A DNA stretch of 32,000 nt, taken from positions 480,001-512,000 of the forward strand of contig NW_008806276.1 of the NCBI RefSeq assembly GCF_000400465.1, read 5' to 3'. Below are positions 3,690-20,740 of the stretch, piece by piece. The first letter of the stretch is position 1, and the number at the start of each line of letters is the position of its first letter. Source of the stretch: Wallemia ichthyophaga EXF-994. Its lineage: Eukaryota; Fungi; Basidiomycota. Made by a program: the position numbers and the translations under genes. Under the pieces are notes generated by a model that was not told the DNA's origin, did no database searches, and worked only from the letters and a program-made list of their open reading frames with translations.

Positions 3690-3720
3690 ATGCATCGAGA
3701 AACATTAAAGTATCATAAAT

Positions 3721-6688
3721 TCATCTATAGTAAGGGTAGTTTTGATTGGGCGGTGGTGCTTGTTGGTAGTATTGCTGGTAGTTGGTTGGAGGTGGTGCGT
3801 GTGAGGGTTGTGAGGGTTGCGAGGAGTAAGGTGTTTGATTTTGAAATTGCTGTGGCAGTGGTGGGGGAAAGTTGTTTGGTGGCTGTTGATTATATGGTGA
3901 GCGCGGATGCTGTCCGTAAGGAGATCGTGGTGGAGGACTAGCATAACCTGCACCATAGTACGGCGAGGCAGGTTTGGGAGGAGGTTGAGGCATATGCCCT
4001 GACTGTCTTTGCTGGCCGTACAAGCTTTGATAAATACTTGGCTGAGGTTGAGGCGGTGGAGCTGGCATACCGCCATAACCATACGAGGCACTTGAAGGTG
4101 TTGAAGATGCAGGAGGACCAGATGAAATTGTGGGGGGAGACGTTGTGCCCGGCTTTGGAGGACGATGTGGTGTACTTACGCCAAGCCTGCTGAACTCGTT
4201 TTCGAACGAACTTCCACCTGCATCTGCAGCCTCCGCTTCGATAACTGCCTGTACGCGCTCCTTGGCTCTACTATTGACGTATACATCGACATCTCTCTTG
4301 AGTTCGCGTACGGCATTCTCGAGATCTTCGTAAAACATCATAGCTCTGCTGACACCGTTGGCAGCCTCGAAATACGTATCACCAGCTTTCTTGAACTTTT
4401 TCAGTACCTCTTTGCGACGTCTGTCAGATTCTGCATGTTTCGTGTGTATCTCCTTGGCCCGCGCTGAGCTGGTCAGCTGAATCCAAGCGCCATTCAACTC
4501 TTCCAATATTTTCAGCTGGTCAGCGATGGAGCCCTCTATAATCTTCTGGTCCTCTTTAAATTTGTCGAGCTCTGAGCCGAACATATCGGTTTCAACGTGT
4601 TGAGCTTTACGGTTGAGTATGAGAAGATGGGAGACATCATCATTCTGAATCTATAAGGGGGGATTGTCAGAAAGTCACTTCAGACAGAAATTTTCACCAA
4701 CTTTCTGACGCAATACTTGGATGTGTTGACTTCTAAACTTCTTCAAACCCTTCAAAGCATCCAATAACCTCGTAATTTCACGCGCATATGCTGTCATCTG
4801 GCGAGATTCCTGTTCCGAGTGCTCCTCAATACCTACATCGACATCGAGCAAAGATTGTTGGCGAGTGTGAGAGGGTGTCTGGCTTGAGACGTAATCTTTC
4901 ACATAAAGCGCTAGCTCGTTATCGCTGTCATCCAAATCAGACGCTGAGTCGTTTAACAGTCTTACGTCAGCATCTATGTATTGGTATACCTGTTTGATTG
5001 ATGCATCGGATTTACCCGCTTTCTCCAAGCCGTCGTAATGTGCCTTGAGTTGTTGGCGCCATTCTTTAGTTTGTCTCGCTGAAGGTGATTGTGAGAAGTT
5101 TGCGTGCTGCATCTTGATTTATATTTTAGTTGCGTACTTTAGCCAAGTCAGAAACTCACCCTAGCCTGCTCGCACTCTTTCGATTCAATGTCTAGTTCAT
5201 TTGATATCCAGTTCAGGTCAGCGAGAATACGTTCTCGCTTAGTCTCAGTGGTGCTTATCTGTCTAGAAACTTCACCCGAAGATTCCTGCGAATAAATTGT
5301 TTTAGCCAATTGCTTGATTTCCCCACTGACGTCGTAGTTGATCTCATTTGATGACTGCACAAACTTCCTCAAACTTCCTGGCAAACCAAGATGCTCGATC
5401 GCGGCTTCTAATTCAGTATCTGTTACCTCAACAGTCTCAGTAACCGCTCTGATTATCTTGGCCTTCTCTTCACTGTATATTGACGCTGCCTCGTGTACTG
5501 AGAATGGAACAAGATTGGCAAACAAATCAGAGCCAATACTCTTCTGTACCTCCGGATTTTGATATATTTCAGTGATCGTTACTGCGTTTGCTGCGTTAAG
5601 CTTATCTACCGTGGAGAGAAGGTTCTCAGCAGGGATTGCTTCATGAAAAATCAAGTCATTCTCCTTTATAAGTTCATTCTTGTACTCCGTGCATTTGGTC
5701 TGATGTGCTTTGCATAACGATGTGATCACGCTTGAAACATCGGCGGGGAGGGTATCACATGGGGCGAAGAAGGTGTTAAAAGTCGAACCAAGTCTATAAG
5801 ATTCCTTGGCGAGGCTTTCTGCGAGCTTTACTCTGGCTATAGCTTCGCCATGTTTATCCGATGCGTTGTCCACCATTGCGCGGTAATATTGAGTCTGTGA
5901 AGCAAAGTAATTGCTTTTTATCTGCAAAAAACTCCACCAATGTCGATCAAAGATGCTTTTATTGACATTCTCGCGTACTGGTTCTAGTAACGAGTTGTAT
6001 TGGAAAGAGCATTGAGAAGCAAGCTTCGCTACAATACCCATAGACTTTCCATCACCTCTGCCACCGCGCGTCTTTTCTTCGACAGTTTTCTCCAGAAAGA
6101 TTTCCTGTGCCTGCGCGAGCATGAGTGCACTCAAGAATCTGACAACGTCTCTGCTGAGATCTGTAGACGGGGCATGGAGGAAGTTGTTGGCTATATAGTC
6201 CCACAGCCCAGCTGCGACTCTTGTGTTGTAGAAAGCTGTCTTGATACCTTCGGGATCTGATCTGTTAGAAGACGAAGCTAGTACCGAGTACGTTGTAGCG
6301 AGATTGAAAAGCACAGAAGCCTTCTCGTAAGCAAGAGAATGCTGCGATACATCCTGGGCAGTGAATATATCACGCCAATTAAACGTTACTCGAAGCTCTG
6401 GGAATCGCAATTCAAGCATCTCAAGCTGACCGTAGTAGCTCTGGAGAAGATCTTTGCCTTGAGTCAGGTTAGCAAGGAGCAATAACGCCACTGGCGATTC
6501 CCACCTGTAGCATCAGTCGTCGAGCCTCTTGTCGCATCTTGCCTGAACCGATTCAGTGCGGCAACAGGATCTGTGTAGTTGGAGGGATCTTCGCCGTATA
6601 CATTTGCAATAGTTGTCTTAATCCCATAATTGAAATCTACGTCTTCTGTAGACTTGGTTTGCAGAAAAATCAACGGCGACTTGTCCAT
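3721..6688 (-). CDS. BRO1: BRO1-domain ESCRT accessory protein (Bro1/ALIX family), 940 aa
   Basis: complement(join(3721..4650,4702..5112,5160..6457,6505..6688)). N-terminal SPLI...TEDVD...YGEDP...RQDA, YYGQLEMLELRF, YEKASVLFN, KENDLIFHE, V-domain IQNDDVSHLLILNRK, Pro/Gln/Tyr-rich tail. Introns of 47, 47 and 51 nt. Confidence 0.9.
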
Positions 6689-6820: not shown

Positions 6821-8268
6821 TTATATGTGATTTCTTTTCGGGTCATGCTGCGGTGGGTATATCATACAGAACAGTAACGCGGCTGTTGCGGCTGCTGTGA
6901 GTGGGAGTATAAGAAAGTATCCAAGCGCGCTAGATAGGTTTTAGTTACGAACACAGACGAGCACCTCACTCACTCTGCAAATATTCCAAACGCAGGCGCG
7001 GCAGGGAGCTTATCGCGTACTTCTGGTATGGCGAAGAGAGCAGCTGAGGTGACAACGTATGTCTGGAATGTATTAGCGTTGAGTGTGGGGGCATCCGGAT
7101 ACACTTACCTCTCCCATTACTGGTCTGCGATAGATGACAGCAACTACAGCCGCCCAAACGATAGCTATAGTGAGAGCCCATAGCATAACGATGCTGTTAA
7201 ATGTGAGTACTAACGAAAAAATGGCAAAATATCTTCTCACATGGAGATAGCGAAAGCTCTGACTGCATTTGATCGCCTTATTGTTATCTTTATGGTCCTG
7301 CGCACATCATTTTCCAGCGTTGCGTAATCGACACTGCTAATGACATAATTTGGAAACGTGCCTGAAGTTCTGACAAAACTAATAGCGCTGAATTGGCCAA
7401 GGTCGGGCTCTGATACGTTTGACCCTGCATCCCAAGCGAGAAAGGTTATGTACGCGCTATACTCGTCGAATGGATAACTCGTTGGGTCAGATTTGAGTGA
7501 TGATCTGCTTTCTGTCCAATCGAATGGTATTTCAACTTGGAATGAGGGCGTGAATGTCAACTCGAGCGTGCTCATATCTTCAGGCTTGCGCGACCATATT
7601 ACTGAATCTGGTTCGTAAAATCCTACCGCGCCGTCTCTCAAGAAAACTGCCTCGTGGTCTATCTCGCTTTTTGATTCGAATTTAGACAGAGTCGCATTCT
7701 CGTTTATGTATGTAGTTATGTTCCTATTCAGTACCCCACAATCTGCTGCTGTTTGTGCGTCATTCGTGTAGCCTGGTCCGCAGCCTGAAAATGAGAAGCG
7801 CATTTCTGGGTGTAAGGGAGATTAGCTAGCATCATCATAAGTTTTGCCACACATACCAAGTTTTTTTTCGTCTATATCTACATCCGTTACGGAGCCATAG
7901 AGTGCCATCTATAGGACATGAGACAGAAACTAAAACAAGCGGCACACACTCACGCCAGATGTCATTTGACCGAGGTCAGAGCCCATTCCATCTCCCTTCT
8001 CTAATTGCACCGATGCTCTGTAGCCTAGATAGCTGCCTAGCGCGCTGAAGAAGACAAGAAGGATTACTGCAAAGATGAGTGCGAGAGGGGTATACCGCCA
8101 TTCGTGGAAAGTGTTGTACCATGCACTAAGTCTGTGAGCTGCTCGTTTAGAGCGCTTCTCAGCGCCGGGTTTAGGCACGGGCTGCTTCGACTCATTAAAG
8201 TCGCTGCTGTAGCTTCTGGTCGGCTGCGGGTAGTCTTTGAAACTGGAATCGGTGTTTGAGGTTGTCAT
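6821..8268 (-). CDS. DUF4436-like membrane protein, 404 aa, with pentameric ligand-gated channel-like motif order
   Basis: complement(join(6821..6929,6974..7062,7109..7193,7241..7805,7857..7908,7954..8268)). Five introns of 44-51 nt with GT donors, branch-like motifs and YAG acceptors give one open frame. One N-terminal TM, a beta-rich ectodomain with YPFDEY, then ITIRRS, three TMs and LFAIPEVRDKLPAAPAFGIFADALGYF, which recalls the DUF4436 LFAxPxxRNxxPGxPPxG...D pattern. Confidence 0.75.
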
Positions 8269-8585: not shown

Positions 8586-10169
8586 TCACTCATCATCCTC
8601 GTCTGAGATGATAACCTTCTTGCGTCTGGGCGGAGCAGGGGCAAAGGCACTAAAGCTACTTTCAGCTTGGTTAGGCAGCCAATGGTCATATTCGTGGCGT
8701 TTTTCGTGGTTTTCTTCATGAGACTCTGCGTCATCTCTAATATTCCCATCATCTTCATCTGTGCTTAGTGCCTCTTCTTCTGAAGCGTCAACATTCGACC
8801 AGCTATCCGCGATTTCGACATCGTTACGGCTGTTGTTGATAAAGTCGTCCTCCTCATCATCTTCGTTGTATCGCTCCCAGCCCGGCCGTTCTGACACGCC
8901 AAAAAAGGCACTCGCTGGCGAGAGTCTTTGTGAAGTTGATGATACTGATGATACTGGGGTATTTGAGTGTGATTGAGATGATGGTGAGTTTGAATTTGAG
9001 TGTGAGTGGTCAGAGCGTTCTTCTGGGTGCTCTTGGCTGTTGCGTCTGTCAAATGAAGAGTCCCACGTTCTCCTCACTCGGTCGGTAGCTGTGAGTAGAT
9101 TCCTGACGCGTTCCCGCTCACTGCCACTATCGTCACCCTCGTCGCTCTCTCCATGCTCATCATGCTCCTCGCCATTCTCCTGGACCCAATTACCACGTTC
9201 ATCTCTCCTATTAGACCTACTTTCAAGCCCTAACGCAGATTCCATGGCATTTGTAACTCGAGTGGCCATTTCGTCCTCGCTCGAGTTCTCCTCTTCGCCG
9301 TCTTCTTCGCTCCATTCATCGGACTCTGCATCAGTATAAAGTTCTCCGCTTTGCCCAAATTAGCTGTGTATTAGAACCACAATAAACCCACCATTGCGTA
9401 CAAACGCCACCGACGAGCTCTCCTGTGCACCTGCCACAGCGCATAACACCATCTTCTCTATCCATCACTGGCTGGTACTCGCCGCCTGGTCTGAACACCT
9501 TGGCCCAGACATCGCCGTTGCGTGTGGGTGGCACATCGAGAGATTCACTGTGCGCGGCAGCGGTGATTTGCGCGAGCTCCTTGACGATAAAGAGCTCATT
9601 CGGTCTCGAGCGAATAGGGGCGCGACAGCTGGGACAGACTTTGGCAGTACGCGGGTTGCCGTTAGTATCGCGGGTAAACCACGAGTGTAAGCAGGAAAAG
9701 CAAGCGACATGACCGCATGTGAGGCTATTGCGCGGTGATTAGTGGGAATGCTGGTGTAGTGAAAGAAGAGCGTACCCGTATGGCTCAATCATGTATTCCA
9801 TGCATATTGAACATTGAAGAACGTTCCTGGGACGCGTTAGAGCCGCGCTCGCCGCTGCAGATCCACCCACTTGATCTTGTCTAGTGCTTCTCGGTGTGAG
9901 AATAAAGTGACGTAGCTGGATTAGTACTGCTCACACTGCGACTGGGCATTTATCGTAGCCTCCTTGAATTCCAACTCCTTCTTGAGACGCTCAGCCTCCT
10001 CGCTGCTCCGCTGCGTGCGCTCATCAACCGCCTTATCAAGCTCAAGTGCGAATGCTCTGCCCCCGGAAATCGGTGGCTGAGAGAGCGATTCTGTGCTGCT
10101 CTTGTCATTCTCTTTGTCTTTATTTCCTGCTGACATTCTCCGCCTTTTCTTATTCTCAGGTGAGGCCAT
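8586..10169 (-). CDS. C3HC4 RING E3 ubiquitin ligase with second C4 zinc finger and acidic tail, Psh1-like, 465 aa
   Basis: complement(join(8586..9348,9392..9724,9776..9826,9871..9886,9935..10169)). Spliced RING: CSICMEYMIEPYGLTCGHVACFSCLHSW...CPSCR. Then DREDGVMRCGRC...GVCTQC and an acidic low-complexity C-terminus, the layout of fungal Psh1. The exon 1/2 junction is the least certain. Confidence 0.75.
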
Positions 10170-18359: not shown

Positions 18360-20740
18360 ATGTAAATATTTGTAAAATAAACCTAAATGCCACTCACACC
18401 AACATCTTCAGGACAGCCCCCACTCAACCGCTCTCCTTCCCGTTACCGCCGACCAGGCAGAGCGAAATCACGCTGATGATTGATAACTACGACAGCTTCA
18501 CTTATAATCTTTATCAATATCTTACCATCTCCGGCGCTAACATTGTCGTTGCACGTAATGACAAGATATCCATCTCTGAAATCGAGGCATTGCGTCCGAA
18601 GAACATCGTAATTTCACCTGGTCCTGGTCATCCTAGCACTGATTCAGGCATTTCTAGGAATGTCATCAAACATTTTGCAGGTAAAGTTCCTATCCTCGGC
18701 GTATGCATGGGGATGCAATCTATGTTTGATGTTTACGGTGGCCATGTTAGCCATGCTGGTGAAATTATTCATGGAAAGACTTCAGCAGTTAAGCACGATG
18801 GTAGAGGTCTTTTCAAAGGCGTTGCTCAGGATATCGAATCAACCAGATATCACTCACTCGCACCTGAATTGACTTCTTTCCCTCCTGAACTAGCCCTTAC
18901 CGCTTCAACTAAGCACTCTGGCGTTGTTATGGGTATTCGTCATCGTAGATTCACCGTTGAAGGTGTCCAATATCACCCTGAATCTATCCTCAGTGAAGGC
19001 GGTAGAAAGCTTCTCGAAAACTTCCTCCTCTTGAAGGGTGGTTTATGGACTGAGAACCCTGAATTCGGCGTTGGTGACGAGAAAGCTCCAAAAGTTGAAG
19101 CTGATAAGAGCGTTAATGGCGTCGGTGCATCTCCACACTCAAAATCACAATCAAAACTACCAACGATACTCGACAAGATTAAGCAACAACGCTTATTAGA
19201 CATCGAAGAATCAATAAACACACCTGGCAAATCTCATTTCAACATCAACGAGTCTTTAGAGTTAGATTTAGCACCACCCCAGATCAGTTTCAGTGACAGA
19301 GTAAAACAAAATCCAGCAAGACCAGCTGTAATGGCTGAGATAAAGCGTGCATCGCCCTCTAAAGGTCTGATCGCGCCAAATGCAAACGCAGCGACTCAAG
19401 CCAAGTCCTACGCTCTCGCAGGCGCCTCAGTCATTTCCGTTCTCACCGAGCCTAAATGGTTTAAAGGCTCGCTTCAAGATATGAGAATGGCAAGGGCTGC
19501 GATAGACGGTATGGCGAATAGACCCGCCATCCTCCGCAAAGATTTCATTCTTGACATATATCAAATTGATGAAGCTAGATTATATGGTGCTGATACAATT
19601 TTGTTGATTGTTGCTATGCTGTCGAAAGAAAAGTTGGTAGAATTATTCGAATACGCTAGATCTAGAAGTATTGAAGCGTTAGTTGAGGTCAACAATGCAA
19701 ATGAAATGGAGCTCGCCATAGAGATTGGCTCAAAAGTTATTGGAGTGAACAACCGCAACCTACACGATTTCAACGTTGATATGTCGACTACTTCGAGACT
19801 AGCTGATATGGTAAAAGATAGAGACATATCATTATGCGCTTTATCAGGAATCACAGGCAGGAAGGATGTCGAAGCCTATCTTGAGCAAGGCGTAGATGCC
19901 GTTTTGGTTGGTGAATCACTGATGCGTTCATCTGATCCAGATGAATTCATAAGGGAGTTGACCAACACGCCAGCAAAAGAAGAGGATTACAAAGGACCAC
20001 TAGTTAAGGTTTGCGGGATTTCTACAATCACTGATGCGCTGGTAGCCAAAGATTCTGGTGCAAATTTTATTGGGATGATCTTCGCAGAAGGCAGCAAGAG
20101 GAAAGTGACGCTGCAGCAAGCCAGAGATATCTCATTAGCTGTGAAGAACTCTGCCAACGCTTCAAATACTGTGTTTGAAGGTGTGCATTCTTCCGAATAC
20201 AACGACACTTGGTTCGATTACCAAGCACGAGTGATAGAATCTGCGTCGAGAATACGTCCACTTCTCGTCGGAGTGTTTCAAAATGCCACACTCGAAGCAA
20301 TTCTCGAAGCAGTACACAATGTACCTCTCGACATTGTACAGTTACACGGCAACGAGCCTATAGAGTGGACTCGGATGATACCTGTCCCAACGATTAAAGT
20401 GTTCCACATATCAGGATCGGATGAGGCTCACCAGCTGCTTAACCTCCGTCAGAGCGGATACCACAGCATGAGTCTACTGGACACGGCTGTTCCCAACTCA
20501 CAGCTCAGCGGCGGCGCTGGTAAAGCGTTCGACTGGAAGATAACCAAACAGATAAATACACATCGCCTTAACTCAATTCCTCTCATTGTCGCCGGTGGAC
20601 TCACACCCGAAAATGTGCAGGAAGCCGTCGAGGTATCGAAACCATGGGCTGTGGATGTAAGCTCAGGTGTGGAGACGCAAAGCAAGAAGGATGTAGTTAA
20701 GATAGTAGAATTTGTGAAAAAGGCTAAAACTCTTAAATAA
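18360..20740 (+). CDS. TRP1: Trifunctional tryptophan biosynthesis protein (anthranilate synthase component II / IGP synthase / PRA isomerase), 776 aa
   Basis: join(18360..18361,18412..20740), or start at 18476 if the first intron is wrong. IDNYDSF, SPGPG, GVCMG, GVQYHPES (GATase). AEIKRASPSKG, SVLTEP, LRKDF, GVNNRNL (IGPS). VKVCGI, VQLHG, AGGLTPENV, VDVSSGVE (PRAI). Confidence 0.97.

Follow-up and report, generated by a model that had tools for sequence, protein, structure and literature searches.

Ion channels of the pentameric ligand-gated type (pLGICs) have seven positions that are conserved superfamily-wide (Jaiteh et al. 2016, PMC4795631). Conservation within the superfamily is 100% for the proline of the Pro-loop, 94% for the arginine just before the first channel helix (pre-M1 Arg), 88% for the proline between M2 and M3, and 77% for the proline kink of M1, and the pre-M1 Arg is the salt-bridge partner of the Pro-loop aspartate (PMC4795631). 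The same study, which is the broadest published survey of pLGICs, described them as near-ubiquitous except in multicellular plants and fungi and did not detect them in Fungi (PMC4795631), confirming a statement made in a first-pass annotation of the DNA analyzed here. This DNA is a 32,000-nucleotide stretch (the window) of contig NW_008806276.1 of the salt-loving fungus Wallemia ichthyophaga EXF-994, positions 480,001 to 512,000, and the element under study is a six-exon gene on its minus strand encoding a protein of the DUF4436 family, which the first-pass annotation, prepared from the sequence alone, had proposed to be a divergent pLGIC relative with a Cys-less Pro-loop.

A profile search of the PDB, a controlled profile-profile alignment, and AlphaFold2 modeling followed by Foldseek all backed this proposal. 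Profile comparison and the predicted structures of homologs both suggest that the protein resembles channels of the neurotransmitter-receptor type, the structural part of this evidence being of modest quality. The DUF4436 family, including the Wallemia gene, is considered to be a distant branch of the pLGIC superfamily with a rearranged architecture, with a probability of homology of roughly 0.78; the support from the PDB ranking, from hhalign, and from AlphaFold2 and Foldseek is moderate to good. Since M4, the M1 proline and matches to the Pfam channel profiles are all missing and an additional N-terminal helix is present, the protein is not filed as a canonical pLGIC or a canonical subunit, and is classified as a new architectural variant related to pLGICs.

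Membership in DUF4436 (PF14494) was established by a Pfam match above the gathering threshold (score 52 bits, the cut-off being 23.2; E 8.2e-14; residues 225-388) and by the 12 relatives, all of which exceeded the gathering score (best E 9.3e-18). An NCBIfam search found nothing. The family carries no assigned fold or function in the sources examined. Only positions 93-249 of the 255 in the Pfam profile were matched by the window protein, indicating that in the Wallemia lineage the N-terminal part of the ectodomain has departed from the Pfam model. Word-indexed homolog searches returned 2, 2 and 8 proteins, and an exhaustive HMMER scan of 1.84 billion representatives returned only 10 at E <=1e-3; the Wallemia lineage is thus very divergent, and the alignments available for modeling are shallow. 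The first-pass annotation had described the family as best known in mycobacteria; the named relatives found here all belong to Basidiomycota (Pluteus, Rhizopogon, Trametes, Suillus, Punctularia, Tulasnella and Wallemia), and no relatives were found when metagenomes were searched with a family alignment. A DUF4436 gene of Aspergillus flavus occupies one row in a published expression table. The family alignments used in this study comprised 12-16 sequences and left out bacterial DUF4436 members. The full-length relatives aligned have a common architecture of an N-terminal tail, a transmembrane (TM) helix designated TM0, an ectodomain, three helices and a variable tail; the upper ectodomain differs greatly in length and sequence among members, many of which have long, low-complexity tails.

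When a hidden Markov model (HMM) of the family was searched against 177,635 PDB sequences, the top three matches were all pLGICs, namely chemotactile receptors of octopus and squid (8eis, 9e6b and 8eiz; E 0.025, 0.029 and 0.17). The alignment was near-gapless over 93 residues and placed the YPFD motif on the Cys-loop, the pre-TM1 arginine on the pre-M1 RR, and TM1 on M1. A phmmer search of the PDB with the single window protein found nothing relevant.

For profile-profile comparison, a pLGIC profile was assembled from GLIC, ELIC, GlyR alpha1 and nAChR alpha7, each 100% identical to its PDB chain, together with three bacterial genomic pLGICs; a scan of genome contigs for pLGICs yielded only 4 loci. 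One control pLGIC, from Gracilimonas halophila (NZ_JBHULI010000025.1, locus L007), has an in-frame stop six codons past YPFD at about position 990 of the locus, which reflects either a pseudogene or an assembly error and was entered in the alignment as X. Against five prokaryotic pLGICs, hhalign aligned the family over 151-157 columns with a probability of 56-68% (P 5e-5 to 1e-4), and the addition of GlyR alpha1 and nAChR alpha7 raised the probability to 80-88% (P 3e-6 to 1.5e-5) over about 155 columns. The score against the seven pLGICs was 49.2, compared with 24.5 for the best of 50 block shuffles (20 columns) and 19.7 for the reversed target; against the five prokaryotic pLGICs the score was 43.9, compared with 31.4 for the best block shuffle and 19.0 for the reversed target. 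The seven-pLGIC alignment was collinear, starting at the Pro-loop, continuing over beta7-beta10, the pre-M1 Arg, M1, M2 and the LPxxP loop, and reaching M3. By itself, the stretch between the Pro-loop and the pre-M1 Arg, which is TM-free, reached P 1.1e-4, and the transmembrane part by itself gave a weak signal (P 0.005). In these alignments, YPFD was placed on GLIC Y119-D122, R300 on R192, L358-P359 on L246-P247 and P362 on P250, and relaxed settings placed D116 on GLIC D31, adjoining D32, in a region of low alignment confidence. Sequence identity between the window protein and GLIC or ELIC is about 13-15%.

Of the seven pLGIC signature residues, the window protein has five (Y233, P234, D236, R300 and P359). 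In the Pro-loop, Y233-P234-F235-D236 conforms to the [F/Y]-P-x-D pattern; all family sequences share the P, F and D, and 15 of 16 have the Y. R300 is found in all 16 sequences and lies about three residues before the hydrophobic M1. P359 in the M2-M3 region is conserved in 14 of 16 sequences, and P362, which corresponds to GLIC P250, in 16 of 16. The YPFD aspartate and the pre-M1 Arg are separated by 64 residues (70 in GLIC), and the pre-M1 Arg and the LP motif by 58 (54 in GLIC). Fourteen residues are invariant across 16 family sequences (G105, G110, D116, P234, F235, D236, Y238, P256, R300, W316, P352, R355, P362 and D369), and C131, C145, N252 and P359, like Y233, are near-invariant (13-15 of 16). 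In pLGICs, the interface that couples the ectodomain to the membrane domain is formed by the beta1-beta2 loop, the Pro-loop, the pre-M1 segment, the last part of M2, the M2-M3 loop and the beginning of M3; nine of the 14 invariant residues fall within these elements.

Structures were predicted with template-free AlphaFold2 runs on alignments of 9-12 family members. The model of the full-length Pluteus homolog (P0011; pLDDT, the predicted local distance difference test, 64; predicted template modeling score, pTM, 0.51) consisted of a long N-terminal helix, a beta1-beta2 hairpin, a poorly modeled middle, the YPFD loop followed directly by four strands (beta7-beta10), and three helices at 244-274, 281-300 and 305-344. 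In a Foldseek search of the PDB with this model, which gave 297 matches at E <1e-3 in total, all 50 among the matches listed were pLGICs (E 5e-6 to 7e-5, probability about 1.0), including ELIC, GluCl, GABA-A, GLIC, DeCLIC, GlyR and nAChR. The best matches of the model of a Wallemia-lineage ortholog (P0002; TM0 and ectodomain only) were pLGICs and soluble acetylcholine-binding proteins (AChBPs) at E 1e-4 to 3e-2; a small number of antibody Fabs ranked lower.

The gene model was obtained by GT..AG splicing of the reverse complement of 8400-6700, which joined six exons into 1215 nt encoding 404 amino acids and a TAA stop. The five introns are 44-51 nt each, have GT..AG ends and contain branch sites similar to CTAAC or CTAAT. 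The features are as follows.

6821..8268, minus strand: whole gene; start codon 8268-8266, stop codon TAA 6823-6821; collinear with the orthologs in L001, L002 and Wallemia hederae

7954..8268, minus strand: exon 1 (residues 1-105); fast-evolving basic cytosolic tail (residues 1-59), TM0 signal-anchor (residues 60-83; 8091-8020), linker

7909..7953, minus strand: intron 1; 45 nt, GT..AG; the ortholog in L002 does not have it and reads through the junction

7857..7908, minus strand: exon 2; strand predicted as beta1 and the beta1-beta2 loop ALYGSVTDVDIDEKKL; G110 and D116 (7878-7876) are invariant in the family

7806..7856, minus strand: intron 2; 51 nt; not in L002

7241..7805, minus strand: exon 3; most of the ectodomain, with C131/C145, the sequons NIT, NAT and NVS, and the Pro-loop YPFDEY (7476-7459)

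7241..7805, minus strand: exon 3, continued; predicted beta7-beta10, pre-TM1 IKITIRRS with invariant R300 (7275-7273), start of M1

7194..7240, minus strand: intron 3; 47 nt; not in the ortholog in L001

7109..7193, minus strand: exon 4; remaining M1 (W316 invariant, proline absent), the short basic loop RRPVMG between M1 and M2, and E339 after it

7063..7108, minus strand: intron 4; 46 nt; not in L002

6974..7062, minus strand: exon 5; M2 TYVVTSAALFAIPEVRDKL with invariant P352 and R355, M2-M3 loop LPAAP (7008-6994), start of M3

6930..6973, minus strand: intron 5; 44 nt; interrupts the codon of invariant D369; not in L002

6821..6929, minus strand: exon 6; M3, 12-residue basic C-terminal tail, stop; no fourth helix after M3

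All of the peptides listed in the first-pass annotation were found in the spliced product in the order given: SVTDVDIDEKKLEMRF (residues 111-126), FYEPDSVIW (185-193), YPFDEY (233-238), FPNYVISS (273-280), IKITIRRS (294-301), TM1, a linker ending in GE, VRDKLP, PAFGIFAD and TM3. The three ectodomain sequons that it named are likewise present (NIT151, NAT159 and NVS252). The interval that it gave for YPFDEY, 7465-7476, spans YPFD alone, the full motif lying at 7476-7459. The annotation had also matched YEPDSVIW to GLIC YEPEAIW; this correspondence was rejected because no significant hhalign signal was found in the N-terminal half of the ectodomain, though Y186-x-P188 is conserved in the DUF4436 family. 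Its term 'Cys-less' is true of the window protein only in that no cysteine flanks the Pro-loop.

Two related loci, L001 (Logan SRR33769984) and L002 (ENA ERZ27248985), were recovered. L002 has no counterparts of window introns 1, 2, 4 and 5, and L001 has none of intron 3; wherever an intron is missing, the ortholog encodes exactly the residues predicted across that window junction. The NCBI-annotated W. hederae protein TIA91300.1, which is named a DUF4436 domain-containing protein in UniRef, is 82% identical to the window protein with no gaps across all junctions. Both the intron-lacking orthologs and this independent annotation support the exon chain at all five junctions. Divergence between the window gene and L001 is saturated at synonymous sites (pS about 0.86), and nonsynonymous divergence (pN) is 0.095 in the core from residue 105 to the end, which indicates strong constraint; the N-terminal tail (residues 1-59; 8092-8268) has a pN of 0.51, about 5 times the core rate. 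The DUF4436 gene is constrained and functional, under strong purifying selection. L002 carries, unlike the window, a private intron in the last exon near the 3' end. The variation in intron presence among these close Wallemia-lineage orthologs (window 6930-7953; L001 559-1208; L002 691-1664, 1720-1967 and 1968-2028) points to a fast turnover of introns, by gain and loss, in a compact genome.

The first-pass annotation overlooked TM0, the C131/C145 pair and the absence of M4. TM0 is a hydrophobic helix (residues 60-83) that follows a 59-residue basic tail, and a hydrophobic segment is present at this position in all family sequences aligned. After the ectodomain there are only three hydrophobic segments, and 12 residues follow TM3. 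Basic residues precede TM0 (KRSKRAAHR) and follow M1 (YRR) and M3 (KR), and the sequons and the Cys pair all lie within the ectodomain. This pattern of charges and sequons suggests that M1 runs out-to-in, M2 in-to-out and M3 out-to-in, an orientation that fits the M1-M3 topology of pLGICs. TM0 would run in-to-out, like M4, and could putatively stand in for it. The possibility that M2 is too short to span the membrane was considered and rejected; if R300 is taken as the counterpart of GLIC R192 and L358-P359 as that of L246-P247, the 58 residues between them are adequate in comparison with 54 in GLIC. The Cys pair C131 (7780-7782) and C145 (7738-7740) in the early ectodomain is conserved in 14 of 16 sequences, suggesting a disulfide, and the N252 sequon of N252-V-S-E-P256 (7405-7419), conserved in 14 of 16, is followed by the invariant P256.

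The gene product is best explained as a glycosylated DUF4436 membrane protein. Its predicted layout would consist of a cytosolic N-terminal tail, the TM0 signal anchor, an extracytosolic beta-sandwich domain with a Cys-less YPFD Pro-loop, the pre-M1 Arg, M1, a short basic loop, M2, the LPxxP loop, M3 and a short cytosolic tail, with no M4. In the mechanism proposed here, the protein would assemble into a ring, probably a pentamer, and its variable upper ectodomain would sense a ligand or a physical cue. The resulting change would be relayed to M2 via an invariant interface cluster made up of the beta1-beta2 loop residue D116, the Pro-loop residues Y233-P234-F235-D236, R300 ahead of M1, and P352, R355, P359, P362 and D369 around the M2-M3 loop, and M2 would gate the flow of ions across the membrane. 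TM0 may occupy the peripheral place of M4. We infer the oligomeric state, the pore, the gating and the role of TM0, and the complete channel mechanism, with its ring, sensing ectodomain, coupling and M2 gating, is put at slightly below even odds. The more specific proposal that TM0 takes over the M4 position in a permuted four-helix bundle and that these proteins are gated pentameric channels sensing extracellular chemicals, pH, or ionic or osmotic conditions in fungi is doubtful.

A number of results weigh against the explanation proposed here, and some of them are what might be seen if DUF4436 were an independent family with a beta-sandwich and three helices, in which YPFD, the pre-TM1 Arg and the post-TM2 LP arose by convergence or chance and biased AlphaFold2 toward a memorized fold. 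Profile-to-sequence searches failed in both directions: Pfam Neur_chan_LBD (PF02931), the check named by the first-pass annotation, and Neur_chan_memb (PF02932) had no match at E <=10 in the window protein or in any of the 12 relatives, and an HMM of the seven pLGICs scored the family at only 5-8 bits, no better than one random open reading frame. With hhalign, the family was not significantly matched to GLIC alone (probability 1.5%, P 0.035), the probability stayed below 90% throughout, and the N-terminal half of the ectodomain gave no signal above that of the shuffles. No aligned family sequence has the M1 proline (GLIC P204 falls on V313, and an invariant W316 is found instead); the beta9 aromatic residue is not evident, GLIC W160 falling on V281 in an unconserved column of a low-confidence alignment with Y283 and Y276 nearby; and M2 carries an invariant P352, and in most members a second proline, which is atypical of a pore-lining helix. 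Three helices after the ectodomain and an internal signal-anchor before it are found in place of the four TM helices (M1-M4) and signal peptide of pLGICs. The structures modeled were those of stand-ins for the window protein, P0011 being about 20% identical to it and P0002 66%, and their confidence was modest to low (pLDDT 64 and 53), with the YPFD region itself poorly modeled. TM-scores were 0.22-0.33 for P0011 and 0.2-0.33 for both models overall (rmsd, the root-mean-square deviation, 7.5-26 Å), and the Fab beta-sandwiches among the weaker matches of the ectodomain-only model are in line with an independent origin. The matches listed for the two models, pLGICs together with AChBPs and a few Fabs for P0002, would fit a ten-stranded sandwich of the pLGIC/AChBP type, yet pLDDT is low, the middle of the domain is unmodeled and its N-terminal half is without sequence signal. 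With only 9-12 sequences in the alignments, the motif may have steered AlphaFold2; the structural evidence agrees with that from sequence but is of modest quality, given shallow alignments and low-confidence models. An origin independent of pLGICs is nevertheless considered improbable, since the collinear alignment, about 155 columns long, has roughly double the score of the best among 50 block-shuffled controls, which preserve the YPFD block, the hhalign score grows as more diverse pLGICs join the profile, the TM-free segment alone reaches P 1e-4, the YPFD-Arg and Arg-LP spacings are close to those of GLIC, and no other fold appeared among the 50 P0011 matches listed.

The evidence for homology serves equally well a descendant of the pLGIC fold that does not conduct ions, having lost this ability or never had it. 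The coupling apparatus would then belong to a sensor, receptor or scaffold, such as a stress sensor at the cell surface or in endomembranes, and the protein need not be pentameric. Such a function would suit the loss of M4 and of the M1 proline kink, and an M2 that has an invariant proline, an altered charge pattern and a conserved hydrophobic L348 with no clear 9' Leu; the long, fast-evolving, low-complexity cytosolic tails of many members would suit the binding of partners. However, conservation is highest at the residues through which pLGICs link binding to the opening of the pore, which is harder to explain without gating, and no partner, signaling domain or phenotype is known. A non-conducting protein is the leading alternative, with the odds leaning clearly against it. 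That the exon chain is artefactual or the locus a pseudogene is barely credible, as the five junctions are confirmed by intron-lacking orthologs, the annotated W. hederae protein aligns collinearly, the reading frame is unbroken and there is strong constraint on nonsynonymous change. The remote pLGIC branch proposed above is the reading retained here.

The first-pass annotation was also right in regarding the locus as a native spliced nuclear gene of a fungus: the contig is that of W. ichthyophaga EXF-994 and the neighbors are housekeeping genes. The window encodes a BRO1/ALIX protein, a Nar1-like protein, a trifunctional Trp enzyme, NDC80, an ArfGAP, an S28 peptidase and ICE2, and a search of the window for a second copy (paralog) of the DUF4436 gene found none. 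The gene with BRO1 and ALIX V domains (Bro1/Rim20-type; ~3700-6688, minus strand) begins 132 bp downstream of the DUF4436 stop codon. Rim20/PalA is a component of the fungal pH-signaling pathway. A BRO1-domain neighbor is kept at both related loci (L001 1641-3101, L002 2222-2567), which may simply reflect their close phylogeny. On the upstream side, an acidic Ser/Asp/Glu-rich open reading frame of 227 amino acids without a Pfam match (8586-9269, minus strand) ends about 320 bp from the DUF4436 start. The tryptophan-biosynthesis gene (18476-20740, plus strand) is intronless and encodes a trifunctional GATase-IGPS-PRAI enzyme identical to a protein of W. ichthyophaga EXF-994. A 754-residue protein of the window has an identical counterpart on contig KE007226.1 of assembly GCA_000400465.1, which is the assembly of this strain.

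Literature searches found no publication tying DUF4436 to pLGICs, the A. flavus table row being the sole mention of DUF4436 that they turned up, although structure-based classification resources may already group them, and public annotations read 'DUF4436 domain-containing' or 'hypothetical protein'. If this fungal family were shown to belong to the superfamily, it would fill the phyletic gap of pLGICs; if its members were also gated pentameric channels, the notion that fungi are without such receptors would no longer hold. DUF4436 would gain a fold and a testable mechanism, and the new subunit architecture, TM0 plus M1-M3 without M4, would bear on the part played by M4 in folding and gating. 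A possible class of fungal cell-surface receptors would also be gained.

In comparison with known systems, AChBPs, which are soluble, are among the best structural matches of the ectodomain-only P0002 model, and the cephalopod chemotactile receptors are the top PDB sequence matches of the family HMM, 8eis sharing the YPFDE motif with the window protein; the AChBP and chemotactile-receptor matches are all marginal (E 0.004-0.17), and the chemotactile receptors are canonical four-helix animal Cys-loop receptors, unlike the window protein. GLIC and ELIC are the best profile-profile partner and the best Foldseek matches. The window protein differs from them in having a 59-residue cytosolic tail and the TM0 anchor in place of a cleavable signal peptide, in lacking M4, the M1 proline, an evident beta9 Trp and a Pfam Neur_chan match, and in carrying prolines within M2 and, early in the ectodomain, a conserved Cys pair. 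It shares with GLIC and ELIC a Cys-less beta6-beta7 loop with an identical Y/F-P-F-D tip, an Arg before M1 and an L-P-x-x-P loop after M2, as well as the same order of beta7-beta10, M1, M2 and M3 with similar spacing and, in the topology proposed here, a matching orientation.

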